DNA of 64,000 nucleotides, from assembly GCF_000150275.1 (NCBI RefSeq), contig NW_002060949.1, positions 4,098,449 through 4,162,448 of the forward strand, given 5' to 3'. How positions within the stretch are numbered: position 1 is the stretch's first letter; every line of letters begins with the position of its first letter. A model generated the notes under the pieces. That model did no database searches. It was given only the letters and a program-made list of their open reading frames with translations, and was not told the DNA's origin. This document shows, in pieces, positions 21,490 to 45,916 of this stretch. A program made the position numbers and the translations under genes. Origin of the DNA: Trichoplax adhaerens. Its lineage: Eukaryota; Animalia; Placozoa.

Positions 21490-24400
21490 ATGTTTTACCT
21501 GGGTACTAGCTCAACAAGTATGCACGATAAATTGCTGCTAGTATTGATCAGCTCTTTACTAGTGTTGTCTGACTGCCATGGAGACCATCTACCAAGCGGT
21601 GTATCAGGGAACTTTAATACCTTCCGTGGAAAAATCTCAAGGAAATCATCAGCAAAACATACATTTACTGCAAATATTACTTCCCTTGCGAATGAAGTAA
21701 GTTAAAATGGTTAAAACCTTCAACTAGTGCAACTTGAGAAGCTACGTATACGATAGTACTGTACTACTGTACCTAGATGCTTTTCTTTTAAAATTACTGA
21801 ATAAAAAACGCGTACGCTCGTACATACCTATAAATGATGTACAGTAATGTAACTTGAAATCTTTAAAGCTTGTAGATAATGTAAATATTACAATATGAAA
21901 GGACATTGTTACTTCGGTACAGGACTTAACACATATTAAATCATTATGCTGATTAGACAACAAGTATTCGCATCAATACTGTTTCACTGGATGCTGATAA
22001 AAGACGTCCAATCGAAGTAGTAATTCGACAGAATGATCATGTGTTGTCTTGGCCTTTACCAACTATTATTGAAGGGTAAGTAATACGAAGAACAATCTCA
22101 TCGAATTAGCTGAAAGAAATGTGTTACAATGACCTACGATGTCGGTATTATCTACTGTATCATTTCAATTATATTTATTGCTGCTTATTTAGCTTATAAA
22201 ATTTAAACTACTATATTTTTTTAGTCGACCTACATACTCCGTAAGCAGAACACTCTGTCCCTTTGGCCAAGGAAATGTGATCGAGATTTCAATTGAATTG
22301 TCGACTTACGCAGTTAACGTATCTCATTACACTCTATCCATAGGAATCGTAAAAAACTTTTACATTAGGTAACGGCTTTCCTCTCGGCATACGTGTTATT
22401 GTGTCAATGTACAAAATTATAATGCCTTTTTACTTGTACTTCACATGGTGCAAGTATTAATATATCGACATTACAATCTAATATGCATTGTACAATAATA
22501 TTATTCTTTTATTATTACCCCTTATAGCTCTGCACTGCAAAATTTTACCGGTTCTTTATCATCACCTGCGGTTAGAAAAAAATTGTAGTAGCTACTTGAT
22601 AAACGTACATGTGCATCATTTATAAACAATCGTTAGAAATCCTATTGCTTAAAATAGGTATTCGCATACAATTTCCCCTGGAATGTCGAAAAAGTTTCCG
22701 TAGTTGTCGACTCTAAGTCATCGGCATGCGCAATTGTCTCTATACAAAAAGCGCAGGTAGTTGAAATTGCTGAGTTAAGATTTTAATGCTATAAAATTAT
22801 CTTACTATGATCTATCGTATCCACAATTACCTTAATTAACATCTAAGTAAGGTAGTACTGAAACTTGAAAACTATCAAACTATTAATAGCATAATTACAT
22901 GCATCTCTAGTGCCCATATTTCGATCAAATTACCAACATCCGGTATGCAGGAACATATCAAACTATGCTAACTTCAAGTACTGTCTCAGTAGAGGTGAGC
23001 TTGGTTAATCATAATTCATAGCTTTGATTTTTCAATAGCATTATAAACTAGCGTACGCATAATTAAATTTCAAGAATCAATAGCGGCATTTTTTACCCAT
23101 TTTTTCCGGTTTGCACAGAGAAGTTCTATCGGTCATGAATTTATAATAATCATAGCTGTTTATCCAACTTCCAAAGAGTGTGAATTAAGTAAAACTTCCC
23201 CACTCGACCTTGGAGCTCACTTTAAACCATGTAAACTTTAGTATTACGACAGTTTAAAATCCAATTTGTTTTTCCATAAAATAATTTCAGCATTTTATAA
23301 ATACTGTCATTTTATTTATAATTTCAAAGTCCTTCCTGCTGATATCGTCAAGAATTTTACAATACATGTGAAGCCGACATTGGCGTGTTAGTAGATTATT
23401 TATAACAATATGTGTATATAATTTTACAAATACTTTGCAATTACAATTATTGATATTAAACAGTACTCTATCGAATTTTTAATACGCTATTTCTATACAG
23501 ATAAAAGCTATGCAATTCCGATCGTGGTCGTAAGCTGCATGTACCTTGGTGTATACGTCTTATCATTCCTTTTAGTATGCTATTGGAGATCACTTTATAA
23601 TTTGGCTATTAAAGAAATCAATGGCGATGTGCCGAGTCAAAATGTTTATATAAGTAAGTCCTCCTTATAAACAAAGCTCTTCGATATCTTCTACCCGAGG
23701 TCATTTCATTTTGTTATGTAACTGTATACTCGTGGAAGTATGTAAATGTCATATACGAAAGACAGTGTGATACACTTAAGGTTAAACAGATTTACTTTGT
23801 CTGTCTTTCAAAATATTATTAGATAGCGGTCCAAGTGTCTCTTATGGCACGATTCCTAACCATTTTACGGACGTTAGGGATGAAAATACCAGCATTACTC
23901 ATTCTAGCCCCCTCGAAGAGCAGAGTTTAACTAATACTGAAGACGATCCTGATAGAGGCATATATGATGACCTCAACCAGCATGGAAATGTACGACTAAA
24001 ATCCAAAGAAATATAGCTATATACATATAATATAAGATAAAATGCATTTAACAATGAACTTTAACTACTTCTAGTCAGTCCGATATGTTTCTAATCTATC
24101 TCAAGATAACAACAAGCTTAACGTTCCTAGATTGTATATTTGGTGAGGCTAATTATAATCATTTTTATCTATTCAAATGAATATGTTACGACCATACCTA
24201 AAGGCTGAAAACTTTCCTTGGAATGGTTGTAACAGATAATCTAATGTACTTACGAACTATTGTGTAATTTCTACTTCTAAAGGTACTTAATCGTAGTCGG
24301 CATATTTTATGCGATACCAGTTTTTCAACTTGTAATAACGTATCAAAAGGTAAGTTCATCGTAATATTGATATTTCCTCACATGTCTTTATCTCCGCTAA

Positions 24401-26751
24401 TCAATTATCAGCTATTACATTTCCTAACTGTATATTCATCGTTAATAGTATGTCTAACTTTATTATTTAATGTTCTGATGAACAAGATTGTGAGACGAAC
24501 GGGAAATGATGGAATATGCTATTATAACTTCAAATGCAGTCACCCTCTTTATATCTTCTCGTAAGAATTATAGTGATTAATGTCAAACTAATCACTCAGA
24601 CGGCTTTGAATTCGTTATACTGGGATATACTGTTTTTTTATTGTATTTTGTCATTACATTGTAGGGCGTTTAACAACTTCATTAGCAATATCGGCTATGT
24701 CATGCTAGGATTTTTATTTATAGTTGTAGTCCAGATGAAGTAAGTACCGGTAATTAATATTACGATGCAATTGTACCACAATGGTTTTAATAATACACCA
24801 GGAGCAACTCGTTTAGTAGCTGATCAACTTATTCATTTCCTTAGAAAGGGCATATATTACAAAGCTGTACAACGATGTAGCCAGCTGAGAAACGTAAGGA
24901 TTAAATATAAAAGTTGTATTTAGACATTCTGGTCTTTCTTACAATTATGTACCATGACGTTATCGGTAGAATTACGGAGTTCCCCAACGGTACGGGATTT
25001 ATGCTGCAATAGGTATGCCTCAACCGTAAAATACATTATCTTAATTAATTTTTATATCAGCAGATCAGTAGCACTACATTGCAACCTCTGATGATGCTTT
25101 GCAACATATCTTGCTGTAATTGAAACTCTACAACAGGTATAGCTTTGATTATGGAGGGCATTCTGAGTGCTTGTTACCATATCTGTCCAAACAGATCCAA
25201 TTTTCAATTCGGTACGTCCAATGTATGATTAATAATGATATATACAGTCCTGTAATCATTTATCTATGAAAAATATATTTCTTGGTATAATGGATAATAA
25301 AATTTTTTAACCATTGCTTCTCAGATACCTCGTATATGTATGTCATTGCAATTCTTTCCATGGTCCAAATTTATAATATTCGTCATCCTGACTTAATTGC
25401 TAGCGCACACCTAGTTTTCCTGTCGTTCGCCCTAGTTATCTTTATGGCCGTTTTTGGTGTAGTAAGTCCTTGTGCATAATAAATGTTCTTCTGATTTCCA
25501 ATTGAATCAAATATATCATTTGCATTCATAAATAGTTATTTAAATCCGTTGCTATATGGATCATATTTGACCTGATCTATTTTGCTGTGGTTACAATCTT
25601 ATCCTTGCAAATATATTATGACGGAAAATGGAGTTTTAGTGAGTATAGCGGCACGTAACATATAAAAAAGCAATCTTACTTAATGACACCTAAATATTAA
25701 TGTAATGATGTCTTAAGGTTTAAGAGCACTGAGAAGAATTTGTAGTAGGAGAGATTGCATAGCATCACTTTATTCCAAGGTGATTTTCGATATGATTTTG
25801 TAATAATTCATATACACAGATGTAGATAAATGCGAGTATAGCGATGTCTAAACTTAATCTCTAATCGATAGGATCTGTTTTTCTTTATTGGGATCGTTTA
25901 CTGTCTAAATTTGGCAGCGTAAGGAGTAAATTTTACGTTGAAATATATGCGGATTAATCAATCAGAATATTTGTGTACCTAATATATCTCAAATTTTGTT
26001 ATAGAGGTCTATATGGTGTAATAAAAGAGCCGGATGACTTTGGCACTTTTTTCCTCGCCATTTTTATAAGTAATTTAGCTGCCTATTTGCTTTATTATAC
26101 TATAAAAAAGGTACGTATTTTGTGATTCTATGCTATTACGGCTTTGATATTTATTCTATTTTTTCTGCTTGTAATTAACTGCATTTTGTCAGCTGCGGCA
26201 AGTTAGATACAATGAGAGGAATGAGAAAATTCTTTGGATGCCATTAATTTTAATGCTTATAACTGGCGCTTTGTGGGTTTCAGCAATATATTTCTTTTTC
26301 CATCCAGTATCTTGTTGGCAGGTAATATGTTATCATTATATGATATTTTTTAAATGTGTATTTCAGCTCGTTTGCAAGAGAATTTTTGAAAATGCTAATA
26401 CGAAATGATATTTTGGACAATTTTCTAGTGCTCTCCAGCTAATTCACGTGAATACAACAAGCCATGTATATTTTTAAATTTTTTTGATGAACATGACGTC
26501 TGGCACCTTTTATCAGCAGGAGCTCTTTATACCTCTCTACTGGTATTGATATACCATAGCGAGCTATTTCTATCTTTCTGAAATAGAGACATTATACAAA
26601 ATTGATTTTCTTTGCAGTATTGTGAAGCTTGGATTTGGGTTTAATTATATTAATAATGCATTTTTATCTCTGTCTTTACAACTGTTAGCTCCTACTGACG
26701 TTGGATGATGACCTAATTAGCGTTCCAAGGGATAAAATAAGAGTTTTTTAA
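21490..26751 (+). CDS. sid-1: SID-1/SIDT family transmembrane protein, copy A (25 exons, ~798 aa; alternative ATG at 21520)
   Basis: Manually spliced GT-AG exons: 21490-21696, 21957-22075, 22225-22368, 22528-22570, 22658-22756, 22911-22994, 23119-23230, 23330-23386, 23501-23653, 23823-23989, 24075-24142, 24283-24349, 24487-24560, 24665-24739, 24845-24893, 24970-25012, 25137-25211, 25325-25461, 25536-25638, 25718-25779, 25872-25918, 26005-26110, 26193-26321, 26429-26542, 26689-26751 (2397 nt, open). Signal peptide; motifs [101 protein letters not shown]...KIRVF*. Confidence 0.96.
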
Positions 26752-28719
26752 TTGTAAGTCTAATTTTTGATTTAATGGAAAAATTATTACCTAAGAACTG
26801 CCCTACATTATTAAATTACCATTATCAATTATATTCTGTATCGACATCATCATATACTGTAGAAATACCAGCGAAACTTAATTTGAAACATGCAGCAAAA
26901 TGAATTTTTAGAAGAGTTTAATACTTGATTGCTGATCTATGATATGATTTACATTGCAAGGTATTTGAACTGGGATTTGTTACTTTGCATTACACTGCAA
27001 CTCCTAGTATTTGTTACGGTATTACTTTCCATATCATTAATTTATTTTTGAAATTAGGAAATGATCTAGAACTTATTCTCAGATAGACTTGACTTATATT
27101 CTGTATCTTCGGTAGCCATTTAGTCCAAGCTATTTTTCTTAGCAAAATGCGTATTTAGCAATTACAAAGAAAGATCCGTTTGTATGATTCGGTAATAATG
27201 TATGAAAATTAGGTTTACATAAGCGATACTCGCTCTACAATAAACTGTAAAATTGAGAAAATTACAAATTTTAACCAATATTAATAAAACAAGTGAATTT
27301 AGTGATCGTAGTAATCGATCTCTTGAGTTACTGATTACAAAAGGCGAAAGATGATTGTTAAATAAATACCTAGTATTGTGGAATAGTGACATTAGCGCTA
27401 GCATGATAGGCATATGCACGAAATAAGTAAATGTCTCATTAACGGCGGATTTTAAACGGGTGATTACATTTAATTACCATTTCGTAAGGTAAGCAACAAA
27501 TCGTTTTAAATCTTGCTGGGGTCATCTCATTTGTATTAAAATAAACTTTTTGCTTTGTTAAATGATAAATGGTAAAAAATGTACATTACTTCATCCACAA
27601 ACTGCTGAAATGATACTTAGATTCAATCTACAACTTCTGATAACCTGTATATACGAGTATATGCTGATAGTGTTGTACTTGAATATGTGGATAGTAGAAA
27701 TGTAGGTAAATACATATCGTACGATCAAGTCTTGGTCTTAATAATGTTTATTTATTTTTACTGCCTGCTAAGATTAGTCTTCCATGGTATAAGTGAAGAT
27801 GCTTCGTCGTTCGTCTTGGTGCTTATAATTAAGTACCGTACTTGCATGTTAGCAATTCTTTGTCTTACATCTCTATTTCGATAGAACGAGAAAGTGGCTA
27901 TATATTAATTTGCATACAAGCGATATAATAGGACATGATTTTTTATGTTGTACATGGCTTGAAATGGGCAATCTAATGCAGTAAAGTAATCAAAGAAAAA
28001 ATTTATAATAACTGTAAGGTACTGCCATATCTCGTATCATTATTATGGCTCTAGGCTTCCAGCGATCCAATCGAGTACAGTAGTAGAGAGTAGAGTAGAT
28101 CGTATAGAGTATTGTGAGTCTACATTTCCAATACTTGGTAGAGCAAATTAAATTAAAAGTAAATTATAGACTCTTCGCCACATATGGATGGGGGGATTGG
28201 GGAAGAGACAATAACCCTGTACTGATAAAATTGAAGTAGTTGCTACATAATCCGTTGAGTTATGGACAAACCTCCAGAAGTCGGATAATGTCCCAAATGG
28301 ATATACAGTATTCTATAGCACGCAATACCAGACGGATTATAGCTAGCACGGTATCTATATGTTATACACTATTTATAGCATGGGCGACCGGGATTTATAG
28401 GTATAAAGTATACGAATTAATAAAGTACTGTAGCACTATCGATGATAGCGACGCTACTGATATTTTAACCTTAACGAAACGACTATCCTTATTTATATCA
28501 CCATATGCAGTGAAAAATGGTACTCTAAATCCTACCCTTTCCATCCTTAAGCTCTGCGTTGAAGTTATTCAAAGCGTGTGTAGTGTAGGCCGAATCCGCA
28601 TCTATTGTCTTATTTTCAGCCATTCTTGCAATGGGACAATGGCATACTGTACGACGTAGTGTAATCGTCTTTGATAAGAGTGTCTACTGTTATAATGAGT
28701 GTCGCTGACGTTGATATCA

Positions 28720-28805
28720 TTGATATGCTGTACTGTGTACACTACAGTACTTGCTAGTACTTATGCTTGTACTGTAGTCACTACAGTACTGTACACTGTA
28801 CCAGT
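28720..28805. repeat. Second TACAGTA/TACTGTA-rich cluster, upstream of SID-1 copy B
   Basis: TACAGTAC at 28743, TACTGTA at 28770, TACAGTACTGTA at 28782-28793; same words as the 20550-20688 cluster. Confidence 0.6.
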
Positions 28806-30506
28806 GTCTGTCTCATTTGAGCAATTGCGAGTACGTAGCGAGTTTATTAATAACATAAGCGAATTAACTAATTATCTTATATAGCATATACATATATATT
28901 ATTATATCAATAATTAATTCTCGTCAGTATAAAATAAGATTTCAAACGATCGTAATCTCGTTGAATGAGCAATGAACGAAAGAGTCACGACATGACATGC
29001 CATAAATAATTTCACTGTTTGCTGTAATAATAATAATCAATATTGATTTCATACGCGCTTCATGTGATGCAATTACGTCATATATATCCACTTCAACCGT
29101 GTACCATCAGACAGTACTTTCCTTGTCCAAGAAATCAATCGGTCTAGCTAAATCGCAAGCATGAAAGTAATCCTGTTCTTGTCTTATTAATGTAAGTTTT
29201 CTTATTGATTGTCAATTTTACACTCAATTTAGAGTCCAGAAACTTCAATCGATCCTAGTTTCTACTCTACATGATGTAGCCAATGAGAGTTTTCAATGTA
29301 CAGTGCTCTGTAATTTGTCAAGTGTTGCTTTCTTGCCCTTATTTTAATGTCTACAAGAACCGATTTGAAAGTCAATAGCCACAGTCAGATAGGTATCATG
29401 ACTCCTCATAATCTTGACTGAAAGTTATTTCTGACAGTATTCATGAAATCGATAGTCAACACTAGATCGCAATATTGCCTTTTTCGACCAGAGTCGATTA
29501 TATATTCTACAGCACGGTAGAAATACGAGTCTAACTCTAGTCAGAAATTGATATTGAACAGCATTCAATATGCTCTTAGAAATATGAGTACAAAAGGAAA
29601 TCGTAACCAGCGACAGAGGGGCAAAAAAAAAGGAGTGAAAGCCACCCAGTTCAATACAGTTCGTGTACGTGGTAGGCATTGCCCAAGTAAATCGATAAAG
29701 TAATAGAATCCCAGGCAATCTTGATTCGACTACCGTAGCCAGTGCTTAACGCCTGATAGTGAATTAATGTAGTCGTTCATTGATAAAGTAAGTGGGATAC
29801 ATTAGTAGAATGAATTGAAATAAATTGGCAATCTTGCCTCTATCAAGCAAATCTTACGAGTGCAACTCTGCTGTCACTGAGGCAATCGTAAAAGACTGGT
29901 GGAACAGACTTCGTGTCTATGTAAAGTAAATGGATGGACCAAAGACAGATAGTCTTGCCCTTAACTAGCGTAGGATATAGAAGTACGAATGTAACGACAC
30001 AGATGCTAGAGATACTTAGTCAAGTAGACTCAATTATGAAGTAAATTGATGCAATAATAAAATCGAAAGACAGACCTTGCCTTGACTTTGACGGATAATC
30101 TAGAGCAATAGATGCATAACTGATATCCTATAAAAAGTGCAATTCAATCTACTTGTTTACCCTATATTAGTTATTTATCAAGTACGTAAATCATTGCAGT
30201 AATAAATAGAATGAAAGGAAAGAAGATAACCTAGCAAATGACTACAACTGACTGTAGAAATTCAGATGCATCTCTTACCCACACTCATGTTATTAATTAA
30301 TTTACCAGTAGGAAACATCATAGTATTCACTTCCATGGCTGATTTGATACGGGCTGATTCAATTTTATCTTTGTATCTATTTTAGTAATTAATCGACACA
30401 GCGAATTTAGAGAGAGCTACACTAAACTCAAATTTGGCCAAGACTGTACAAGCTATACGTACTGTATATATACGCTTTTGCGTCAATCAATCACCTAACC
30501 TACAAG

Positions 30507-33500
30507 ATGATATCGTCGCGCATCCAGCAGTTTATCTTAATTATACAACTGACTTTGTTGATTTGCTCATTGTGCTGTCATGGAAAGCGCAACTACATTG
30601 ACCTGCAAAGTGGCACATCCAAAAGTTTTCGCGGAAATGTTACCAATATGGCATCGAAATTTCACTACTTTCAGTATAATATTTCTTCTCCATGGAAAAA
30701 TCGGGTTAGTCCATTATCTATAGATGAATCAAGTAATATATTGCTAAATGGATTACTGTAGGTTAAGATAAAATGTACCGGTAAATATTTATTTACAATA
30801 GTTTACTAGAAGATTTACTAGTCTACTTGTAATCTGGAAATGGATATTGTATGCTTCCTTTTTGATGCTAATGAATAATATATACGAAATTAATAGATGT
30901 AAATTATACTAATGATAGATGAACACTATTCGCGTCACTACGACTTCCGATGATGCCAGTATTGCACTTCCGATCTTGGTCGTCATCCAACAAAATCGTT
31001 TTGCTACCTCATGGCAATTGCCTCTTTTAATAGAAAAGTAAGACTTCTTTAATTAATCACTTCACAAATCTTAAACTTGATCGATCAGTTGATGATCTAG
31101 AAATGATACTTGCAGTCTCAGTAGTTGTAAAATCTGCTCTGCGCTTATTGTTAGTACGGGATCCTAATTGTTAAAATCAAACTTTTACTGACGCTTGATG
31201 TTTATTAGACACTATAGCAATTCGGCTAGCAGAATTCTATGCCCGTTCGATCAAGGCCAGGTCATAAATATTGTCGTAGAATTTTCCACTTTCGCCAATG
31301 CTACTATACATTACAGCTTTACTGTAGCAACTTTGGAAAATTTCTACTTAGGGTAAGTAGACTTTCATCATGATTTTTCTATACCTACGCTTATTTTTTT
31401 GGCATTCTAAAACTACAAACTTTCTCTACAGACACCACCAAAACCATTTTATTGCCTCTCCATCATCACCTATGGTAAGCAGACTAAATATTAGATTGCA
31501 CTGAATTATTTTATTTGTCGAAGTGATAATGTACTCTCTGTAAGCTGCGCTTCAGCGTAATTTCATATGCGGTGAAGTATACAGGTTTTCCGGTAAACAA
31601 TATACCCTTGTGGTCATACATTACACTAATGTTAATGAAAGTAAATAAATACGCTGTCAAATTTTATTTATTTTCGTCTATTCGTATGGTTAAAATTATT
31701 TACTGCTGTTGTAAAAAGGCTTCAAAATAATAAAATAGGAGCTACTGCTTCCTATAGGCTTCACATTATTACATAAATTAGGCACGTCTAACAGCTACCA
31801 AGGGCTATCTGTTGTAATCTTAGACTAATTTGGGGCTGCACTACAACTTCCTATATGTGGGCTGACAAATATTTTCGACTTCTCTAATGTAAATCTTAGT
31901 CCTTACTAATACAGTTTTGTTAGAGACTTAGCAGTATCAATTTACAAATGATCGATCAATACGCTAAACGTACTCGACTAATCCACATGGATGCCAGTAA
32001 TATTCCGTTAACACTCTTGTATTTATATCATTCACTCATACCGATTAAAGTTATCGTTACTATCTTATATACTGACAGGCCTTTTGGCAATTGCTAATTC
32101 AAATCTTAATCCATATCGACGCAATTTTCTAAGTGATTATCAATATACATATGGTTAACGTAACATAACTTATACTTACTATACGCGTATATATGCATTG
32201 CACTTTTACTTTTTTAGGTATTTGCCTATAACTTCTTAACCAATGCCGATGCTGTTTCACTGACGTTAAGTTCTAAGAAGTCTTCATGCGCGGTCGTTTC
32301 TGTACAACAACCTGAGGTGAAGATAGATACATAGATGAAACAATTTCAAAAGCTTGTCATAATACTATCATTATCGTAATTACAATGTACATTAAGATTT
32401 CGTTGCTGTCTTTATTTTGATTTATAATTGGTGATAATTTCTGTATCATATTTCTTTCTCTTAGTGCCCTTTCTTTGACCAAATCGATAATATCCGTTAC
32501 GGAGGTCGATTTCAAACTATGTCAAAATCAAGTTCAATTTCAATACTAGTAATAACCATCATTTGACTGATTGTACTTTTCATTTTAGTTCCCATTTACT
32601 TTATAGTACTTAACTATCTATACGAATCATAAAGTTAAATCTCTGAAAATACTATTTGCTTGATTATTTATTCAATTTTATATTTTATGTATTTTAGCGA
32701 AAGGATTATGCGAAAGGTTTTCTTGCAATCATAGCCGTCTATGCAGACAATCCAGAATGTGAAGAAGAGATCAAATCCCACAACACTAACGCTTGTAAGA
32801 TTTATTAGTGTCCAATCTCATAGTATATCAAAATGCTGCTTAATTTAAATTATGCAGGCAATAGCATTTCCAGAAATTGAGCTTTATGTTGCAAAAGCTA
32901 TCATTTAATAATTGTACAAAATTTCTTTCAGTACTTACTAGCAAGGAAATAACAATATCGATAACGCCATCACTAGCTTGTAAGTTCTATTCTCTCCTAG
33001 ATAATTACCCCGATTTATTACCTCTGTAGTTTAATAAATTTTTCCCTACTTTCTACCATTAGACCAACGCTATACCATGCCCATCTGTTTATGTGTACTT
33101 GTATTTCTAAGTATCTACCTAATATCAGCTCTATTGCTAAAATATTGGCGCTACATGTACGAGAAGGCAATTAAGGGGATTGAAGAAAAATTAGCAAAAC
33201 AAAATGATCGTAAGGCTTTACCTTGAGTAAATAAATCGAAACTGCTAATGACATGAATTGGTAGTGTTCCACTTAATGAATACCACTTTCTTTCTTGGGA
33301 AAACTTGCAGCTACAGGTATCAATAACAGTAATCATGTTGCCAATAACAATACAGCATCGACCAATCACCAACCAGCGAATTCTACAGAGGCTGAGAGAA
33401 ATGCAAGTGAACCGGAAGTTCGACACTTAGCCTTACATGCTATAACGCTCTTCACCTTTCATAGGGATATAATTGACATTGAAACTTCTGGTAACGTTGG

Positions 33501-36500
33501 TAATGCGACTCAAGAAAGAGTACGTAGTCAATATACTCATATTCTAAGAATCTATGTAGAAGGTACATGATGTACACTGTACAGTATCAAAGGTACTATC
33601 TGGAATTATTTTTTACCGGTCTGAACTATGCCATGTGATACATTTCGTCTTTCTGCTGATACTACAGTATAGTTTTCGAATCAGTACTACCACGACAAAT
33701 AATACGATGTTTTAACCTAGCTTGTGACCATATGACGATAGCAAACGTTTAAGGTAATTTAATCGGCTTTATTGTTACAGAAGGACGTATCCGATTTAAC
33801 GCGAATAGAAAACAAGGCAAAAGTTCCAAAGGATTACTTCTGGTATTTATTATTGCAATATTTTGTTTGCGTTAGACTACACTACACAGATTTAGCATCA
33901 CTCTTACCCATTCACCTAGGTATTTATTTCTAATTGGGATATTTTACATCATACCGGCTGTTCAATTAGTATTAGTGTACCAGAATGTAAGTATATCCAC
34001 CTAGTACCTTGAGTTTTTATAGTAACTGCTTAAATACCTAATGAAGTATCAAATTTTCATAGTCTACCCTCGGTTGTTTTGTACATGTTACAGCGTAATA
34101 ATCCACTAATATTCACGTTATCCCTAGCTTGTGTTCTATTCGGGAAATGAGGATGTCTGCTACTACAATTTTAAATGTAGTCGACCTTTGGGGAGTTTGA
34201 GGTAAGAAATTGTTAAATTTTTTAAGCATTGTTATGACTATTGGAAAATCTTTCTTTAGTTGTCAAAGTTCAATATTTATTTACTAAACTGGAGTTTCAC
34301 ACTTAAGCTTTAAACGCTAGATATGTAACCCTCATTCAAGTATTCAGTAATATCCAAAATCCAACGCCTTGATTATTTTATCAATTATCTATATAAATGT
34401 ATCGCAACACTGTAAATCATCTTACAGCTAACTCGTAAAGCAATACTAATTTCAAATTTTAAAAATTCTCTTCACAATTAATATGAGTTAATGTAGCCGA
34501 GTCAGCCTTGTTCAACTTTAGATAAATTATCTATCTATTATAACTGGATAAAAAATTCAACGGAACTAATATTAGGATTTGTTAAGTAATAATTCACTAT
34601 TAGCATTACGTTTACGATAATAGATCATTCAATAGCTTCTTCAGTAACATTGGCTATATAATGTTAGGAGCCTTATTTATAATCTTGGTTTCTGGAAAGT
34701 ATGTTGAAGATCTTTTATAGCTAAGTAAAAAAGATATCTTTTTAATTTTAAGCAACACTCTGATAAAGGCCTTGTAATTGAATTTATAGAAAATATTTCT
34801 ATGTTCGGGCGGCAAATAAGTGTATCGCACTTGCCAAGGTTGTTATTGCTTTTAACCGTTATAACTAATTAATGCAATTTACAATGATTGCTGTATATAC
34901 AACTTATTATTACAATGTAATACAATCGCTATAATTTCTCATTCGGTAGGGATATGGAGTTCCACAGCGCTTTGGGCTTTATTTCACTATAGGTATTTCT
35001 TATTAAAACTATCAACGTCAGCTAATCTAGAACTGCTGTGTGAAAGTTATAGCTTAAAATATAACTTAATTGCCAGTGATTTATGTACAAAGTTTTAAAT
35101 TATTTACTTTTTTATTATTTATAATATTCGCTTGTAGAGTATGTGACTATATAAATTAATAGTCTGAGGCTAGAAGATTTTAATTGCTTACTTAACAGTA
35201 GATTTTTAAATTCTGAACATAGTAAAGAAACATTTATGTGAATAAGGATTTTGTCCTTAAATGTGATATGAAGGTCGCGTTTAATCTTAGATCAGCTTTG
35301 CAACATCAATGGGTGTATAAACAGCAAAAATTAATTGATAACGTACTCTTTCTACTTATTTTATATTTGAGAATGTATTCAAAATAGTATTATTACCCGC
35401 TCTCTACGCCCAGGTTTTGCCATGATATTAGAAGGAATCCTCAGCGCTACTTACCACATCTGTCCTAATAGATCGAATTTTCAATTTGGTAAATTAATAC
35501 TGTAATAGTTCTAATATGTTAGTAATATTACAGTCTACGGATATTAAAGGTCCTACTGTACTATTACAAGTCGATACAAGTCTGCTAGTATAGAAGTACA
35601 ATATCATACTATTCATCACGGCTGGTTCTCATTATTTAACTGATAATATCGACTCTTTGTTGCCTCATTTTACAGATACATCATTCATGTACATCATTGC
35701 TATTTTAATCATGGTCCAGCTTTATATTGTTCGTCATCCAGATTTGATCGCTAGTGCACACCTAATATTCGCTTCATTTACCATAATCGTTGGCCTATGT
35801 GTCATTGGCGTTGTAAGCTCCAAATTAATATTTTATTTTTGATGTTGAACTGCTATTTATACTTTTTAAATATATTGTGAACTAATGGCTTTGATTGAAA
35901 ATTTAGCTAACGGATGCCTCTCGAGGTGCATGGATTGCTTTCGCAGTATTTCATATCGCCGTAGTCGGTGCATTAACGATCCAATATTATCGTTTTGGAA
36001 CATTTAAATTCGGTAAGGTTTGATTTAGTAAAACCTAATGAATCATTTCAATTTTGATCCGGAATTTAGATGATGAGAAGTATTCTTTTCACTACCAGGA
36101 TTTCGTCGATACATAAATTTTCGTCTAGAGCCGCAGAAATTACATCGCTGTAACCAATTATCTCAACCTAGGGTACTCTATTTTTATGAAGTATAAATAT
36201 CTTTATTTCCGTATGCATCATTTAATTCACGTAATATTTTTAACAATATTTTCCAGGACATCGCCATCTTTATCATCTTTGTTAACTTGGTCAATGTAGG
36301 CCTGTAAGTCGTTTTAATAGCATATAAAATTGCATTTCAGAGTTATTCATAGCCATAATTATGATTTTTACGTTACTTTCTGTTTTAATCCAAGCTTTCA
36401 TTGCCATACTGATAGTATTTTTGTTATATTGTTAAAAAGGATGATATATTATCTTGCTGCAGCTCCTGAAGATTTCGGTAGTTTCATCCTGGCTATTCTT

Positions 36501-37161
36501 TTGGTTAACCTTGCCTTATATTTATTTTACTACATTTATAAAAAGGTCAATCAAATTAAAGTCTCTGTAGAGAATTCGAGTTAAAATTTTATAAACTTGT
36601 GCATTAACATCTGCTGATACGGCATTATTCAATTAGATATCCTTCCAATACTCTGAAAAAAAAACGATGCCTTGGTTACCGATGGTCTTATTTGCTATAA
36701 CAATTGCGTTATGGGGATTAGCCTTGCACTTCTATTTTCAAGCTGGATCAAACTGGCTGGTATGTAAAAATGAATGTAGTAGCAATTCGTATAGTCTCAA
36801 TTCCTTACATACAGTATGCGTAATTGTAAGTATACTAATAATTCGTCAGGTAAGAATTTTATCTTTATTGTCGTTTTTAGTATACACCTGCTAAGTCACG
36901 AGAGTACAATCGAGATTGTATAGTTATGGACTTTTATGATACTCATGATATCTGGCATATGCTTTCCGCTGGTGGAATCTTTTGCTTTCTCTTGGTAAAA
37001 TTTTACTATGCGGATATACAGTACTATGCATAAAAGATCGAGCTTTATATATAGTTGGCAATGTAATAACTGGACTTGTATTATGTTTTACTATTTAGGT
37101 CCTGTTTACGTTAGATGATGACCTTCTTGAACTCCCAAGAAACAAAATTCATCTGTTCTAA
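30507..37161 (+). CDS. sid-1: SID-1/SIDT family transmembrane protein, copy B (25 exons, ~800 aa)
   Basis: Exons: 30507-30704, 30919-31037, 31209-31352, 31432-31474, 32218-32316, 32465-32548, 32698-32794, 32932-32979, 33063-33209, 33311-33519, 33781-33842, 33920-33986, 34128-34201, 34624-34698, 34790-34838, 34950-34992, 35414-35488, 35676-35812, 35907-36012, 36099-36172, 36257-36303, 36440-36545, 36637-36759, 36881-36994, 37099-37161 (2403 nt, open). Motifs [83 protein letters not shown]...KIHLF*. Exon 10 boundaries are the least certain. Confidence 0.95.
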
Positions 37162-39893
37162 TTATCGATTATTAATAATAATTACCATTAATAACATTTA
37201 GAAACATTATAATGTTGGTAAAAAATACACTATTCCGCTGTAACGATACATTATTAAACACAATCAAAGAAATATTTATATACTTAAATCGGGTATATAT
37301 TCAAGTTTTTATGATGATTACATCCAATAGCACATGAGTCCATAATCCAAGTACTATTAATGCACAGGAAATCTTCGCACAATAATAATGATTACAATGT
37401 TTGATATGAATCTATACTAATAATTTTATTGATTCCGTAAATAATTTAAATTTTTTATCTTCTTTCCGCAAAGAAAGTGGAAAGTACCGTATCACAATTA
37501 ATTACTTTTAAAAACGTAAAATTTTATTTATAACGTAATCTAAATAAAATTAGAAAACAAAAGCTGAAATTTTTATTAAAATCGAAGTGAACTAGCGTGA
37601 GGTATTCGCTTGTAGATTTTCTGTAATTTTTCAATACATTGAAGGCACTTACAGGCGATTAGTTTCACCTAAAGGTGATACATGTGGTTATATATCACAT
37701 CCTGCAAGTGTATTGATGGCCACAATAAGACCAATCTCTGTAATCCGAGGTACGATTTATCATAAAAAAGTGGTTATTAATGCACTACAAAGTAGGAGGG
37801 AACGACTTGTATTTAGTAATGTAGCGCAGTCTCAAAAATAGCCTAGGATTAATCAGGTGGTATTTTAAAAAGTTAATTCATGCATAAAGTGAAGTTTCAC
37901 AAATTTTAGTTCTTGTTACAATATTTAAAGACACGTTATCACTTGCATTAACTGACTTCTATGCAATATTAAAAAATTTTGGAATCATGTATTAAAGAGT
38001 AGCTAATAACAAGGACCATAATTGGGTTTCAACTACTAATACTTTAGGTAAAGGCGTATGCTGCCTTATTTCATTTTTAAGCTTAGAAAAATACATACGG
38101 TCAAAGCAACTCTGGCAGCAGAATGCAGATTTATATCGTATATCGCCAAAATCATTTTTATATTAGCAGACCTACATTTATACATTAACAACTAATTGAT
38201 TATCATGCATGATAGATTGAACCTTAAGCTCAAGCTGATAGAATCCGCATAGTCAATACTTTCATCTTAAATATATTATTTTGCGTTACTGCTCTGCAAT
38301 TTGAGTTCATCATAGGAATTTTTACCCAAACTTAGGTAATACTACTGTCACAACCGAGATTGCAACATAAAAATTAATAGGGTTCTTTCCTCTAAAGTGG
38401 TCTAATCGTCTTAACTATCTAAGCAACATACTTTAAGCACCCTTTAATCTACCAAACCTAGATTCGAGTCTTAGACGATAGAATATTCACGTTAAGAATC
38501 AAAAATTTACTCTAAAAGCTACTTATTAAAATGACCGATCGAACTCACTACTTACAATCTACTACTAACAACTGATAACCATCTGTTATCGACTAACTTA
38601 TCAACCCTCTTAATTAAGAACTTCGAGGCTTTTATATAGCCTCACAAACTTCGTTGGTGCAAAACAGTAATAAATTTATAGCTAAATCTACATACTGAAT
38701 ATAATAAGGATCGCAATACACTTTCTATGACATTTAACAGTAGTTAATTAATGGCTAGGTGTTAACATATGATTCATTACTTAACAAAATTATATCGTTG
38801 ATTACGCAATAATTAATTAATTATCACAACTAATGTTATTGCAGGATGCAGATCAATCGTTTCGTAGATTACAACTTGCTAGCAAGAGCTCCTACTAGAT
38901 AACGCCATCTACGTATACAAGTCGACGCCATCATGCATCATCATATAACTTAAACCGTACACCAAACTGCATAAAATTCATATGCTAATACTTTAGCTAC
39001 AAGTATATTAGCTTATACGGGTCATCGTTTGGCAACCGAATTGAAGGACAATAAGTTCTATAGTGAGACCTCAGTAATCATAAGTGAGATGGCAGCACTA
39101 GACATTAACGGACTAGTGATATCAAGGATTTTACCCGTATTTATACATTCATATAACATTTATTTTCATGTTTTTATATGATTAAATACAGCTATACTGT
39201 GAAATAAGTATAATAATAACTCAAGATTAAAAATCATATCGTGAAGTTATAAATGGCTGATCAACAACTTGAAGATAACTCCCACTCGGATATGGACCGC
39301 TGATGAAATGGAAGCGATAATTCCTTTCATCTTTTCTTCAAGAAAAATATAGCCCTGAGTTATTTTGGCGTTCAAAATACGAGATAAACATGCCTCAAAA
39401 CTTCTTCGATCTATTACTAATCGAAAGTAATTCAATATACTATAACTATACATTCACCACCTGACCTATAAACTGATTAAAAGTAGCAGCAGGAGACAAT
39501 CAAAAGTATCCCCTTAATGAGTATAAATGAACATAATACATTATGGACCGTAACATATGGACCGTGACAATATGTCAAGATCCATATGTATATAGAAAGG
39601 ACGTACAATTAGCTATACTGAGCAAACTCGACATTTGCTTATACATAGACATAGTAGAACATAAATAGCTTGAGGAAAGAGCTATTTTGACGGCCCATCA
39701 GTCTATTTATTTATATAATTTACTAGTTTGTTTCAAAAAGATAAATCATCCCCTAATTGCAAATGTAGTCTTGCACAAAGACGATTTTGATTAGACTATT
39801 AGCATAAATTGAAAATGGCAGCTACTACTATTGCTATTTAAGTATTAAACTAACGATTGGAAGTCAGTATAGTCTAATAGAACATTTTCAGCT

Positions 39894-42800
39894 ATGGCCA
39901 CATCTATTCGCTACCAACTATTATTGCTATCATTAGGGATATCAATCTTAATTTCCATACCACGTTCATGGAGTAGTACGGCTCCTATCTTATTAGAGGA
40001 TGGAAGTAAGGTAATATTGGAAGGAAATGTCTCTAACCAGTCGCCCTCTCGCTATTTCTTCTCCTTCAATGTATCCAACATTATTAACAACGTAAGTAAT
40101 ATTGATCTACAGCTAATAGGAACAACTATAGCTATTACCCATTATTATCATAAAGCTTTCAGACTAAATCAAGAAACTGATGGTGAATTATTCACTAGAA
40201 AAAGTTCACCTTTGTGATATCATTTATGGATAAGAGTATCTATAGTAGTATTCTATTCTATTGGATGCTTTAAGACTGAAAATGATTTGTTGTTGCATTT
40301 ATTTTATTTTTACTTTACGTAATGCAGATATCAAGTATTCGTATTACAACCACATCTTTTGATGCAGACAGTCAATATCCGGTTCAAGTCCTTGTAAGAC
40401 AGTATCGCCATATCTCATCTTGGCAGTTACCATTAATGATTCAAAAGTAGGCTTGACATCACCCTTTCCATCGTGCACTATAAGTCATAATTGCACATTG
40501 GATTAAATCATAATAGCTAAACGAAATTACTGTTTATAGTCTTAATTAGAATTAACTTTTAACCCTGGCCAACCATTTTGATCTTCTCTATCTACTCCTT
40601 TACTATTTAGACAAGCCACCCATACAGTAAGCAAGACGCTGTGCCCTTTCGATCAGAGAAAATTCAATCAATTTGTAGTTGAATTTTTTACGTATTCCAG
40701 TAATATTTCAAACTATGAATTAGTGGTAGAAATGATAGGCGATTTTTACTTGAGGTAAAGAGAACACTTCTATTACATAGAAGATAATATGCAAAAATTT
40801 TGACGTCCTTACGCCTGAATTATCCTATGCAGTAGAAATGATGTAAACTGTAAACTGTATACATTTTATTTCATATTCCAAATCCTCTATTTGGCAGTTT
40901 TTTATCGGAGAATTTTTTAGCTACTCCATCCGCACCTGTGGTTAGTGTAATACTTTTACTTTTAAGTAGTCATATTCTCACGAAAGATTCAGTAGCGTAG
41001 ATCTTAACCAATTGATCATCATTATATGCAAAAAAGGTCTTTGGCTATCGCATTCCAAATGAGGATCAAAACGTTATGCTTAAATTCAGCTCCAAGACCA
41101 CCACATGTGCTGTAGTCTCCATTCAAAAGGCTGAGGTAAATAGACCACATTGAACTTCAATTCGTTAGGAAATATAGAATGATATCATTTAAAATAATGG
41201 AGTCAATGATACTTATTCTATCATAATCTAAAATGACAAAGTATACCTATTTTACGGTAGTCTAAACGTGTTCTTGTTCGTAGGCTCCTACGTACTTTTA
41301 TTACTCTCTATTTTAAAGGCTACTTTTCAATATAATGTAATGAAGGCTTTTAGTACCAGGAATGAAATTTTAAAGCCACTATTAATGCAAAGTAATGAAT
41401 CATTTTATGATATTTAGTGTCCGTATTTCGATGAAATTAGCAATATCCGATATAGTGGTCGATATCAAACCATGTTAACATCCAGCGGGCTCACTCTAAA
41501 GGTGCAGTAATATATTTCGTCCAGATTAGTTTTGAAATATGAACAGTTTAAAAATAGCATTACAGAATAACTAGATGCAATCTAAAAGTACAGTAGATGG
41601 TAAATTTTAGCTATACCATCATGAATTGAAAAATTATATTTTATTCATTTAATGCCCAGCCTAGCGACTTTGGCCCAAGAGTAGTTGTTATTATGGCCGT
41701 TTATCCGAATAACAATGAATGTATAGATAATCCTCCAGCAATCCCTTCTACATCCCCACCTGGATCTAAAATTTTATTTGGTAAGTGGATAAAAAACTGA
41801 GCTATAGGCGATCATAAAACACAACATAAAATTGACGCAGGTTTTCTTCTAATCATACGGTATCCAACAAAGTAGAGTCGCTTTATAGCTATCGTTTCAT
41901 GACATAATACTAAATCGATATTAACCAAGTATCTGATCGGATGCCAATACGCATTTTATTCAAAAAACACAAAATATTATTATTCTAGAAGAGATTTCCA
42001 AGAATATTACAGTTACTATGGAGTATTTAATACCCGGTAAGTTGCTTAATTGTGGAAACACAAAGAATTGAACTGTAATTAAAATATATTTCATGTCTTT
42101 AGCTAAATGTACTACGTGCGTATGGTTTAGCAACGGAGTTAATTACAGGCCTTTTTTAATTAATTAGCCAAATCCTACTGGATACCTATTCTAGCCATTA
42201 TTGGTATATTTACGGTAGTCTACGCATTAACACTGCCCATGATCTATTACTGGAAACAGCTATACAAAAATGCTGTAGTTATAGTCCAGCTCCAAGAATT
42301 AAATCGAGCTTCAAGTAAGTTTTGTCAATATAATTAATTACCAATTATTCATGCATAAAATTCCTATACAGATGTAATAAAGCATTTATTTTCTCCACAA
42401 TTGATAAAATGCAGTCTTATACTGATTGATACTAATTGTGTTTCATGAATACCGTTTCTCCATGTTGATGTACGATTAAGAAGCAGTGAGTCAGCAAAAC
42501 AACAACAAGGATGTTTTCGACAGTGTTAGTCTGCTAGCCAAATAGCATATCATCATATTAGAGTGAATGCGGTATAATTTACGGTTTTACGGACTTTTAA
42601 TTATAATTACTATTCCATTTCTTGCTATTATTTAGCCAATTATATATGTGTCTGATCTTTCTAAAAAAGTGGACGAAAAAAATGTTGCTCGCCGATATTT
42701 CTGGTATAAAGTACAGCAAAAGAAATACTCTCACTTTAAACTATCTTTGTTATATCTATGCTAATAAGATTATCTCGGTTAATAGGTACTTGATTATTAT

Positions 42801-45800
42801 TGGAATATTCTATGCAGTACCCGTATTTCAGCTAGTCATGACCTATCAGAGGGTAACACTAGCATAAATATTGACATTACCATTCCGAAGCTAAGAAGGA
42901 CATTAATGCCACCAATATCTATTTTCAGTTTGTAGCTCAACCAGGAAATGACGGACTTTGCTACTATAACTTCTTATGTAGTTATCGTTTAGGCATATTT
43001 ATGTAAGTAAGCGACCATCAACATCGAAAAATTTGCGGTCATATTATTAATACCGATATAATTTCAATTTTAAGAGTTTTTTTCAATATTTAACCTAGGG
43101 CATTCAATAATTTCATAAGCAATATTGGATATGTTTTATTAGGCATATTATTAATAATCGTGACGTTAGCAAAGTACGTACAGTATTCGTATATTATCCT
43201 TAGGCTATCCAGCCATTAAACTTTGCCATTAAAAAAGCAGATATCTGAATCACAGCTGAATATTTTCTTGATAGGAAAGCCATCTTTAATCGAGCTACGA
43301 AACGGTGCAATGACTACGGAATGACATACTATAAGGTACTGAAAAATATCCATCACGAAAAATTGTATTAGCGTAGTCTCTAATTTTTTGTCTTTACTCA
43401 ATATTCGACGCCAGGAGTATGGTGTCCCACAAAGATTTGGAGTCTTCATTGCCATTGGTACAGTAATTTATAAGATTTACTAACTATACCTAACGATAAC
43501 TGAGATCTAACTATCCGCTATATTCCATATCTACCGCCTTATATTAGTACATATCAAGTTTAATTTCTCTATAGGATAAATATGATACTTAGTTCCTTTT
43601 GATGAGATTGATACAGTAGTATTAAAATTAATTCTTTTCGATAGCATCAATCAATCAATCAATCAATGTTATGTTTAGTTCTTTTTGATAGAATCATTAG
43701 CTTTATGCTTTAATTCCTTTGATAGGATATTAAAATTTCATATCCTATTCCTTATAAATAGGTGTTAGTCTCATCATGGAAGGCATTCTTAGTGCATGCT
43801 ATCATATCTGTCCTAATAAAACCAATTTCCAATTTGGTAGGCTCTATATCAATATATTTCAGCATTGCATTAGAGTTAATATCAAGAACTAGATTTTTAT
43901 TACGGTTTATATTGAATTATCCTTGCGTTGCCTTTCCTTTATTGCTGTATCGATGGATACTTCCGATATCTGCATTACTTATATCTTAGTTAAAGTCTAA
44001 AATTTACAATAACTATAACCTATAGATAGTCTTACTTTACCGCAAGATTAAATGTTACTTTCTACACTTATAAGCAATTACTGCTATCTTGATTATAGCT
44101 CAAAATTATGATATGGTATTTGTAATCTATGAATTATCTTACTGTACCTTGATCATGTCTTGACAGATACTTCCTATATGTATATAACGGCTATTTTGAT
44201 CATGGTTCAGATTCATAACGTGCGCCATCCTGATCTTATCGTCAGCGAACACATGATTTTCCTATGCTTTGCCGTAATTATATGCCTCGCGGTCATAGGA
44301 GTTGTACGTTAATGACGAAAATAATAAGTATTAATAGTATAAAAATAAAATTTTATATGCTTCAACAATACTTTCTCGTCACTTACAAATTCAACTGGGC
44401 AAAATGATTAATATTTCGAATACAAGATAGCAATTTGCGAGCCATAGCTGCATTCATTTTAGCGTTTCTAACGTTTTTACCGTGATTTTATATAATATTC
44501 TTATAGCTGTTCAAATCTTTTACACTATGGGTCGTATTTACGGTCATTTATATCGTCACAATTAGTTTCATAAGCGTGCTGGTATATTATTACGGACAAT
44601 GGAGAAAATGTAAGTAGAGCATAATACCTGCTACTGCATATGTCCTAATATCGAACCTAATTTTCTCATCAGACTTGGCCCTTTAATTGATCTGTAATTG
44701 GTTATAGTTTCATGGAAAGGATTTTTCAGTTTTACAAGAAAAGGATGTTTTTCTTCAGTTCGATCTCGTGTAAGTGAATATACTGGTTCTATGCCACCAC
44801 CATACGATTCTAAATAATATTATGATCTTACGCATAGAATAATTAATCGTGAAATGGAAATAATTTGCTTCCTTGTTCTAATTTAGGATCTTCTGGTCTT
44901 TTTACTTCTGGTCAATGCTTTAAACTGGGGACTGTGAGTTCTTTATCAAAATTAGTGCTAAAAATATTTTACCAAAATATTGTAACTTTAATGGCGATTT
45001 TAAGACTTTTATAACTATTTCACGGATGTGCTAATGGCACTACATTTGTAGTTATACCAGTAAAAAAGTAATTTTTATTTAAAATAAAAGAAAATTTGAC
45101 AAAAAAATCCTCTTAACCTACGGGTTTAATGGCAGAACTAATTTGTTATCAATTTGCATACTGTATTAGGGCATTATTTGGTCTGATTAGAGAACCAGAT
45201 AATTTTGGCAGCTTCTTTCTAGCAATTTTCATGTCCAATCTGATGATGTATCTGGCATATTACATTGCAGAAAAGGTAATTATTTCGCTCAAAATTTTAA
45301 AATAAAATTACTAATCAGAAGTTAATAACCATAACTTAACCTTACTAAGGAATTAAAATTAAAACCTTGCATTGAAAGAATTTTAATATTTAAAATTTTT
45401 TAATAGATTTACCATAAGGAAAAAATTCTCTGGTTATCCATCTTATTATCTATTATTGCCACAGTTTTATGGGTATTCTCAATCTACTTTTTCCGTCAAA
45501 ATGTTGCAAAAAGACAGGTAATTTATAAATGATTTTTAAATATTATTAGAAGGAGCAATAAATGCTGCTACAAAATAAACGATGAACTAAGTTATATTTT
45601 TCATCATTAATGCCAATATTAATTTCTTCGTTATTTATTTAAACCAGGCTACACCTGCAAGATCGCGCGAATTAAACCGAGAATGTGCCTTTCTTGACTT
45701 TTATGACTATCATGATATTTGGCACATGCTATCAGCTGGAGCTTTATTCGTCTCCTTTTTGGTAATTATTTGCTGTGATTTTTAGTCCTTTAAAATATTA

Positions 45801-45916
45801 CTTTAGTTATCTTCAGATTTTAAATTAACTCTTTTCCCTTATTCTTCCTATAGCTCCTGTTAAGCTTGGATGATGATTTGGTTACTATACGACGAGATGA
45901 GATAATCGTCTTTTAA
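39894..45916 (+). CDS. sid-1: SID-1/SIDT family transmembrane protein, copy C (25 exons, ~750 aa)
   Basis: Exons: 39894-40091, 40328-40446, 40611-40754, 40898-40940, 41037-41135, 41418-41501, 41660-41780, 41989-42036, 42168-42314, 42481-42524, 42636-42703, 42786-42852, 42929-43002, 43099-43173, 43275-43335, 43415-43457, 43762-43836, 44167-44303, 44507-44609, 44708-44769, 44887-44933, 45170-45275, 45407-45517, 45648-45761, 45854-45916 (2253 nt, open). Motifs [93 protein letters not shown]...EIIVF*. Confidence 0.95.
43561..43761 (+). repeat. Intronic array of short acceptor-like repeats (TTARTTCYTTTGATAG-like) plus (ATCA)5 in intron 16 of SID-1 copy C
   Basis: taatttctctatag, ttagttccttttgatgag, ttaattcttttcgatag, ttagttctttttgatag and ttaattcctttgatag precede the in-frame acceptor at 43761. 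Confidence 0.7.

Follow-up and report, generated by a model that had tools for sequence, protein, structure and literature searches.

Does the tandem array of three SID-1/SIDT family genes in the placozoan Trichoplax adhaerens encode importers of double-stranded RNA (dsRNA), and are all three genes functional? The array occupies positions 21490-45916 of a 64,000-nucleotide (nt) stretch of the forward strand of contig NW_002060949.1 (positions 4,098,449 to 4,162,448; hereafter the window, whose numbering is used throughout). The genes, denoted here A, B and C, are very probably functional paralogs of the SIDT/CHUP-1 branch of the CREST superfamily that arose by duplication in the placozoan lineage and have been kept under purifying selection. 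This is a real but ordinary, long-retained, lineage-specific tandem expansion of a known family.

Three complete genes in a single array

All three genes lie on the + strand, and each consists of 25 exons without an internal stop codon. Every intron is of the GT-AG type (48 of the 48 splice sites are canonical in each gene), and the phases are identical in A, B and C at all 24 introns (0,0,2,2,0,0,0,1,1,1,0,2,0,2,2,0,1,1,0,1,0,2,0,0,0). The coding total of 2.25-2.4 kilobases (kb) per copy is free of stops in a genome with a guanine and cytosine (GC) content of 31%; the window as a whole is AT-rich, with about 31% GC. The human SIDT1 gene also has about 25 coding exons. An earlier note on this DNA, made from the letters alone, had described three co-oriented 25-exon genes with matching phases and no stops, and the rebuilt models are the same in all these respects. 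Even its limits are exact, position 21490 being the ATG of A and position 45916 the last base of the stop codon of C, and the host that it took to be probably placozoan is indeed T. adhaerens (the public models of the genes, on a 5.88 Mb scaffold, have the locus tags TRIADDRAFT_27559, 27397 and 27563).

A scan of the entire genome (105.6 Mb, 1414 contigs) with PF13965 (SID-1_RNA_chan) identifies three colinear + strand sets of exon matches, all of them inside the window, and a protein scan with the public model of one paralog again recovers only these three loci. A, B and C are the sole SID-1 family loci of the T. adhaerens genome. A tblastn comparison of the open segments of each gene region with the other two yields colinear exon blocks with 35-85% identity.

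The gene models were built by our own dynamic programming over splice sites and coding potential, followed by three refinements. First, all phase-consistent exon chains between secure exons were enumerated and the triple most alike across the paralogs was chosen; second, the chains were scored with a family hidden Markov model (HMM) derived from 27 full-length relatives, which were retrieved by a single profile search using the best-conserved exon; third, the results were compared with the public partial models. The initial dynamic programming models, with 22-24 exons, were superseded when exon 8 was added by the paralog-consistent enumeration, and models that lacked exons 20 and 21 were superseded once the public model of C revealed a missed transmembrane (TM) exon. 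An additional 96-nt exon in intron 4 of B (31545-31640) was discarded, because neither A nor C has an equivalent and the HMM alignment has no gap at this point. The predicted boundaries are less certain for exon 10, which encodes a loop, in A and B (the acceptor in B is ambiguous, with alternatives at 33311-33389), for exon 20 of B (acceptor at 36099 or 36129) and for the exon 23 acceptor of A. Three introns of B, namely 31475-32217 (743 nt), 34202-34623 (422 nt) and 34993-35413 (421 nt), are much longer than their counterparts in A and C, which span 76-304 nt.

The public T. adhaerens models, labelled "uncharacterized", cover only the 3' half of each gene, the part that matches PF13965. TRIADDRAFT_27559 (377 amino acids, aa) maps to the 3' half of A, TRIADDRAFT_27397 (380 aa, "uncharacterized protein, partial"; the top profile match, on a scaffold of 5,881,857 bp) to B, and TRIADDRAFT_27563 (400 aa) to C. 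The last of these includes a 12-nt "intron" (44875-44886) that skips an in-frame TAA; such an intron is impossible, and the segment is really the end of intron 20. The true exon 21 of C starts at 44887, in agreement with the protein of Trichoplax sp. H2. For exons 14-15 and 23 of A, the paralog-consistent versions were preferred to the public drawing.

The H2 protein (P0234, annotated as "SID1 transmembrane family member 1") was found by a word search whose query aligned the three Trichoplax half-models with a hemichordate protein; human SIDT1 entries were among the other matches. It has 750 aa and differs from the predicted product of C at 3 of the 750 residues (99.6% identity) with no gap. 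The model of C is thus validated in full, given that the H2 protein was annotated independently. The H2 locus is colinear with the T. adhaerens array, at 99.0% DNA identity. Upstream of the C ortholog, the H2 assembly (NOWV01000040.1, L021:1-7267) has a 1491-aa PF13965 product, which probably joins the A and B orthologs in one gene call.

A duplication artefact of the assembly or of haplotypes has nothing in its favor beyond the tandem layout. The copies are only 41-48% identical as proteins and their introns cannot be aligned, and the same arrangement recurs in the independent H2 assembly, so that an assembly duplicate, which the earlier note had already argued against, is ruled out.

Family membership, zinc site and predicted fold

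The public half-models score 441 (A), 393 (B) and 420 (C) bits against PF13965, for which the gathering score is 28.7, and single exons of the window reach up to 62 bits. Exon 5 of A aligns to positions 6-37 of this profile. In the 5' half, the family HMM matches exons 2, 3, 5 and 6 of each gene. A profile of exon 2 identifies residues 76-113 of the human SIDT1 ectodomain (E = 3e-6), and a profile of exon 3 alone has no match in the PDB. In each encoded protein, a signal peptide precedes a beta-rich ectodomain of about 260 aa, which is followed by TM1, a cytosolic loop that varies between the copies and a helical membrane core.

The exon 17 profile aligns to residues 550-573 of human SIDT1 with a score of 56 bits, and E555, S559 and H563 are retained in A, B and C; the protein alignment places the Asp of the zinc site at the junction of exons 17 and 18 in all three copies. 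The exon 24 profile aligns to residues 771-807 of human SIDT1 (73 bits), with H791 and H795 kept in every copy. The H3-S-D zinc site, which consists of Ser and His in TM4, Asp in TM5 and the HxxxH motif in TM11, is complete in each of the three proteins. This site is common to SIDT2, SIDT1, SID-1 and the CREST superfamily (10.1101/2023.09.25.559159; PMC11194109).

The fold was tested for C, with the public H2 protein as a stand-in. The AlphaFold model of this ortholog has a predicted local distance difference test value (pLDDT) of 82.7 and a predicted template modeling score (pTM) of 0.80, and consists entirely of beta strands from residue 32 to residue 282. A Foldseek search with this model detects human SIDT1 and SIDT2 chains over the full length, with template modeling scores of 0.78-0.87 and 31-34% identity; the best matches are to SIDT1 (E = 4e-49, scores of 0.85-0.87).

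Relationship to SIDT, CHUP-1 and the dsRNA importer SID-1

The same searches distinguish the two branches of the family. The profiles of exon 24 and exon 17 score 73 and 56 bits, respectively, against human SIDT1, 68 and 53 bits against SIDT2, and only 37 and 25 bits against Caenorhabditis elegans SID-1. In the Foldseek comparison, C. elegans SID-1 attains template modeling scores of 0.71-0.75, with 18-20% identity as opposed to 31-34% for the human proteins. A, B and C are therefore not closer to C. elegans SID-1 than to the SIDT/CHUP-1 type; judging by sequence and by the predicted structure, they appear to be SIDT/CHUP-1-like rather than SID-1-like. Because the Trichoplax proteins are far closer to human SIDT1 and SIDT2 than to C. 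elegans SID-1, dsRNA import cannot be assumed for A, B and C from the family name. A role in dsRNA import has been shown neither for CHUP-1 nor for the insect sil genes (PMC5714486, PMC2395250): CHUP-1 does not move dsRNA (PMC5714486), and the three sil genes of Tribolium are CHUP-1-like and dispensable for systemic RNA interference (RNAi) (PMC2395250).

Compared with the human proteins (8JUL, 8KCW, 7Y63), the Trichoplax copies share the succession of signal peptide, double beta-sandwich ectodomain, TM1, loop and helical core, as well as the zinc site (Ser/His/Asp plus HxxxH) and E555. Their loops, however, are shorter than the human ones and of unrelated sequence, with YxxPhi motifs only in A; the copies also stem from duplications of their own and are orthologous to neither vertebrate paralog individually; the split between SIDT1 and SIDT2 lies within vertebrates (PMC11696054). 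Outside vertebrates, the SIDT type also includes the insect sil proteins and CHUP-1 (TAG-130) of C. elegans, the relation to CHUP-1 being drawn from the literature. Tribolium and Bombyx each have three sil genes, which also form a lineage-specific trio; in contrast to CHUP-1 and the sil genes, A, B and C lie closely packed head to tail in tandem and agree in phase at every intron. With C. elegans SID-1 (8HIP, 8XBS), the Trichoplax proteins share the Pfam family, the zinc-site motif and the overall fold, but the match is much weaker than that to SIDT1, and only nematode SID-1 has the ectodomain microdomains that have been linked to dsRNA transport (PMC5714486).

Origin and age of the triplet

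The protein sequences are 45% (A-B), 48% (A-C) and 41% (B-C) identical overall. The TM core is the most similar part (49-58%), followed by the ectodomain (39-45%; that of B is 45% identical to A and 39% to C) and the cytosolic loop (19-29%). At the DNA level, blastn alignments between the copies are restricted to parts of the best-conserved exons (70-82% identity) and include no introns. By the Nei-Gojobori method (NG86), the nonsynonymous distance (dN) between the paralogs is 0.33-0.53 and the synonymous distance (dS) is undefined or about 3, that is, saturated; because the synonymous sites are saturated, pairwise dN/dS between the paralogs is not estimable. These data bear out the unalignable introns and the strongly diverged ectodomains of the earlier note.

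For phylogenetic analysis, an alignment of 32 rows and 772 columns was analyzed with IQ-TREE (LG+C20+F+G4, posterior mean site frequency model), the reference labels being assigned by cluster look-ups. The reference rows come from Balamuthia, the choanoflagellate Salpingoeca, the sponge Halichondria, the cnidarians Xenia and Rhopilema, hemichordates, echinoderms, molluscs, a bryozoan, insects and fish (SIDT2); the tree includes neither CHUP-1 nor SIDT1 rows. In broad outline, it reproduces the species tree. A, B and C form a single clade with maximal support (100/100) and a stem of 1.15 substitutions per site, and the choanoflagellate, sponge, cnidarian and bilaterian rows all fall outside this clade, which sits among non-sponge animals, beside the SIDTs of cnidarians and bilaterians. 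Within the clade, A groups with C (97/89) and B is outside, that is, (B,(A,C)); the tip branches are 0.67 (A), 1.14 (B) and 0.77 (C). The A+B+C grouping recurs in quick trees built from other sets of taxa. One-to-one orthology with a vertebrate paralog was not found, the triplet being placed apart from the fish SIDT2 rows in this tree without SIDT1 rows.

It can be asked whether the three copies instead go back to paralogs of the early metazoans, older than the separation of the placozoans and since lost in other lineages. The identity between the paralogs (41-48%) is indeed little above the identity to proteins of other phyla (38% for a full-length Saccoglossus protein, 44-46% in TM-only comparisons). 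The strongly supported clade on a long shared stem, the adjacency of the three genes and the concurring quick trees make this scenario extremely unlikely. Rather, the triplet appears, from its phylogeny, to be the product of two successive duplications in the placozoan lineage. Under this scheme, B would have split off first by tandem duplication, followed by the separation of A from C, and purifying selection would have acted long enough for synonymous sites and introns to be randomized. Of the old, retained triplication proposed in the earlier note, retention and age are supported by the saturated dS, the unalignable introns and the conserved residues; given the fully supported clade, however, the triplication is old only within the placozoan lineage. 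The placozoan sampling consists of T. adhaerens and the near-identical H2, and depth is expressed as branch length, undated.

Evidence on whether all three copies are functional

Of the 80 alignment positions with at least 90% conservation across 22 relatives, each copy retains 75-77, with the highest number in B. Comparison with H2 reveals 11 synonymous and 6 nonsynonymous changes in B (dN/dS 0.15, binomial p = 1.5e-4), and 4 synonymous and 3 nonsynonymous changes in C (dN/dS 0.21, p = 0.044). The differences amount to 7.3 per kb in the exons and 13.2 per kb in the introns of B, and to 3.1 and 6.1 per kb, respectively, in C. The exons of B and C contain no indels and no stops relative to H2, and all splice sites are kept.

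These observations bear on the possibility that one or two of the copies are decaying or unexpressed pseudogenes that still read open. The restriction of the public T. adhaerens models to the 3' halves is compatible with decay, as are several features of B, namely its branch, the longest of the three (1.14 vs 0.67 and 0.77), its longer introns and its ambiguous exon 20. All three copies, however, have 25 open exons at 31% GC with all 48 splice sites canonical, and retain nearly all invariant residues; it is B that retains the most, and in B, dN/dS relative to H2 is significantly low and the exons diverge half as fast as the introns. Accordingly, the presence of a pseudogene in the array is very unlikely.

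Several considerations weigh against three functional, placozoan-specific SIDT paralogs. The presumed transcription of A and B, and the boundaries of a few exons, are based on prediction and conservation; recent constraint was measured for B and C; the sampling is limited to Trichoplax among the placozoan genera, two cnidarians and one sponge; and support is weak (78/85) at the node just below the Trichoplax clade. The putative biochemical function, furthermore, is modeled entirely on the human proteins, whose role in RNA transport is debated.

Predicted functions and possible division of labor

By homology with human SIDT1 and SIDT2, the three Trichoplax proteins may be dimers located in endolysosomal membranes or in the plasma membrane. 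The membrane core would hydrolyze membrane lipids in a zinc-dependent reaction of the ceramidase or phospholipase type, and the ectodomain might bind nucleic acid and/or sterol at low pH, aiding the uptake of endocytosed material. The copies differ chiefly in the ectodomain and the loop, and a divergence of roles, if any, would be likelier in ligand or trafficking than in chemistry.

The loop between TM1 and TM2 differs conspicuously among the copies: it comprises 101 aa with two YxxPhi motifs (YGTI and YDDL) in A, and 85 aa in B and 58 aa in C, both without such a motif. In mouse SIDT2, YxxPhi motifs in this loop direct the protein to endo/lysosomes (PMC11696054). The confinement of the motifs to A, where they are encoded by the predicted exon 10, is the sole hint of divided roles. 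It has been proposed that the set is sub-functionalized, with environmental dsRNA import, the salvage of RNA in lysosomes and lipid handling shared out among its members, for example with A in lysosomes and B and C in other membranes. Besides the motifs and the different loop lengths, the modest identity of the ectodomains (39-45%) and loops (19-29%) would fit this proposal, and the long retention of three copies suggests non-redundant roles. The catalytic site, however, is identical in all three copies, both sequence and fold are nearer to SIDT/CHUP-1 than to the dsRNA importer SID-1, and the motif-bearing exon of A is a prediction. Taken together, these points make such a set unlikely, and the specific split of the earlier note, in which environmental RNA uptake, lysosomal salvage and lipid handling fall to different paralogs, is speculative.

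Coordinates and gene neighborhood

The coordinates of the genes, their exons and the encoded domains are given in Table 1.

Table 1. Genes, exons and encoded domains of the T. adhaerens SIDT array (window numbering)
Feature	Position	Strand	Basis or remark
Gene A (public partial TRIADDRAFT_27559), 25 exons, 798 aa	21490..26751	+	rebuilt model
Gene A exons	21490-21696, 21957-22075, 22225-22368, 22528-22570, 22658-22756, 22911-22994, 23119-23230, 23330-23386, 23501-23653, 23823-23989, 24075-24142, 24283-24349, 24487-24560, 24665-24739, 24845-24893, 24970-25012, 25137-25211, 25325-25461, 25536-25638, 25718-25779, 25872-25918, 26005-26110, 26193-26321, 26429-26542, 26689-26751	+	
Gene B (public partial TRIADDRAFT_27397), 25 exons, 780 aa	30507..37161	+	rebuilt model
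Gene B exons	30507-30704, 30919-31037, 31209-31352, 31432-31474, 32218-32316, 32465-32548, 32698-32794, 32932-32979, 33063-33209, 33389-33519, 33781-33842, 33920-33986, 34128-34201, 34624-34698, 34790-34838, 34950-34992, 35414-35488, 35676-35812, 35907-36012, 36099-36190, 36257-36303, 36440-36545, 36637-36759, 36881-36994, 37099-37161	+	
Gene C (public TRIADDRAFT_27563; ortholog of H2 "SID1 transmembrane family member 1"), 25 exons, 750 aa	39894..45916	+	
Gene C exons	39894-40091, 40328-40446, 40611-40754, 40898-40940, 41037-41135, 41418-41501, 41660-41780, 41989-42036, 42168-42314, 42481-42524, 42636-42703, 42786-42852, 42929-43002, 43099-43173, 43275-43335, 43415-43457, 43762-43836, 44167-44303, 44507-44609, 44708-44769, 44887-44933, 45170-45275, 45407-45517, 45648-45761, 45854-45916	+	
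A exons 1-8: signal peptide and extracellular/luminal beta-rich domain	21490..23386	+	family HMM, exons 2, 3, 5, 6
B exons 1-8: signal peptide and ectodomain	30507..32979	+	family HMM, exon 2 profile
C exons 1-8: signal peptide and ectodomain	39894..42036	+	family HMM; AlphaFold model of H2 ortholog
A exons 9-11: TM1 and 101-aa cytosolic loop, two YxxPhi (YGTI, YDDL)	23501..24142	+	exon 10 limits predicted
B exons 9-11: TM1 and 85-aa loop, no YxxPhi	33063..33842	+	exon 10 acceptor ambiguous
C exons 9-11: TM1 and 58-aa loop, no YxxPhi	42168..42703	+	boundaries confirmed by H2 protein
A exon 17: TM4 with zinc-site Glu, Ser, His (human SIDT1 E555, S559, H563); D574 codon spans exon 17/18 junction	25137..25211	+	
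B exon 17: TM4, equivalent zinc-site residues	35414..35488	+	
C exon 17: TM4, equivalent zinc-site residues	43762..43836	+	
A exon 24: TM11 with HDxWH (human SIDT1 H791, H795)	26429..26542	+	
B exon 24: TM11 with HDxWH	36881..36994	+	
C exon 24: TM11 with HDxWH	45648..45761	+	

Upstream of the array, a complete 442-aa single open reading frame (ORF) at 10292-11620 (- strand) matches the whole serpin profile (PF00079, 265 bits) and is apparently an intron-less gene. Downstream, a 223-aa ORF at 49223-49894 (- strand) matches Sulfotransfer_2 (PF03567, E = 2e-7), and in the H2 assembly a gene for a 300-aa sulfotransferase occupies the corresponding site downstream of C. The spacer between A and B (26752-30506, 3.75 kb) has a GC content of 0.36-0.37, above the window average, and recurs elsewhere in the genome only as three short matches of 35-77 nt. 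It could contain an unrecognized gene or regulatory DNA. None of the ORFs between the genes has a Pfam match, including the 139-aa ORF at 28240-28659 in this spacer.

Implications

A literature search retrieved no paper linking Trichoplax with SID-1 or SIDT. The description of the triplet in the earlier note as a candidate for an undescribed system goes too far, given that the family is known and already partly annotated at this locus; no new kind of system is revealed. The practical gain consists of complete 25-exon models for all three SIDT genes of Trichoplax.

A long-kept placozoan trio that has diverged in trafficking and luminal ligand, with A in endolysosomes and B and C in other membranes, is quite improbable on the present evidence. 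If it existed, it would amount to a dedicated route of nucleic-acid and/or sterol uptake in an animal whose feeding combines external digestion with endocytosis, and it could make RNAi by feeding workable in Trichoplax.

More generally, the Trichoplax genes offer a clean early-branching comparison for the role of SIDT proteins, whether in RNA transport, lipid hydrolysis or sterol handling, in the form of three natural variants that combine one shared catalytic core with different ectodomains and loops.

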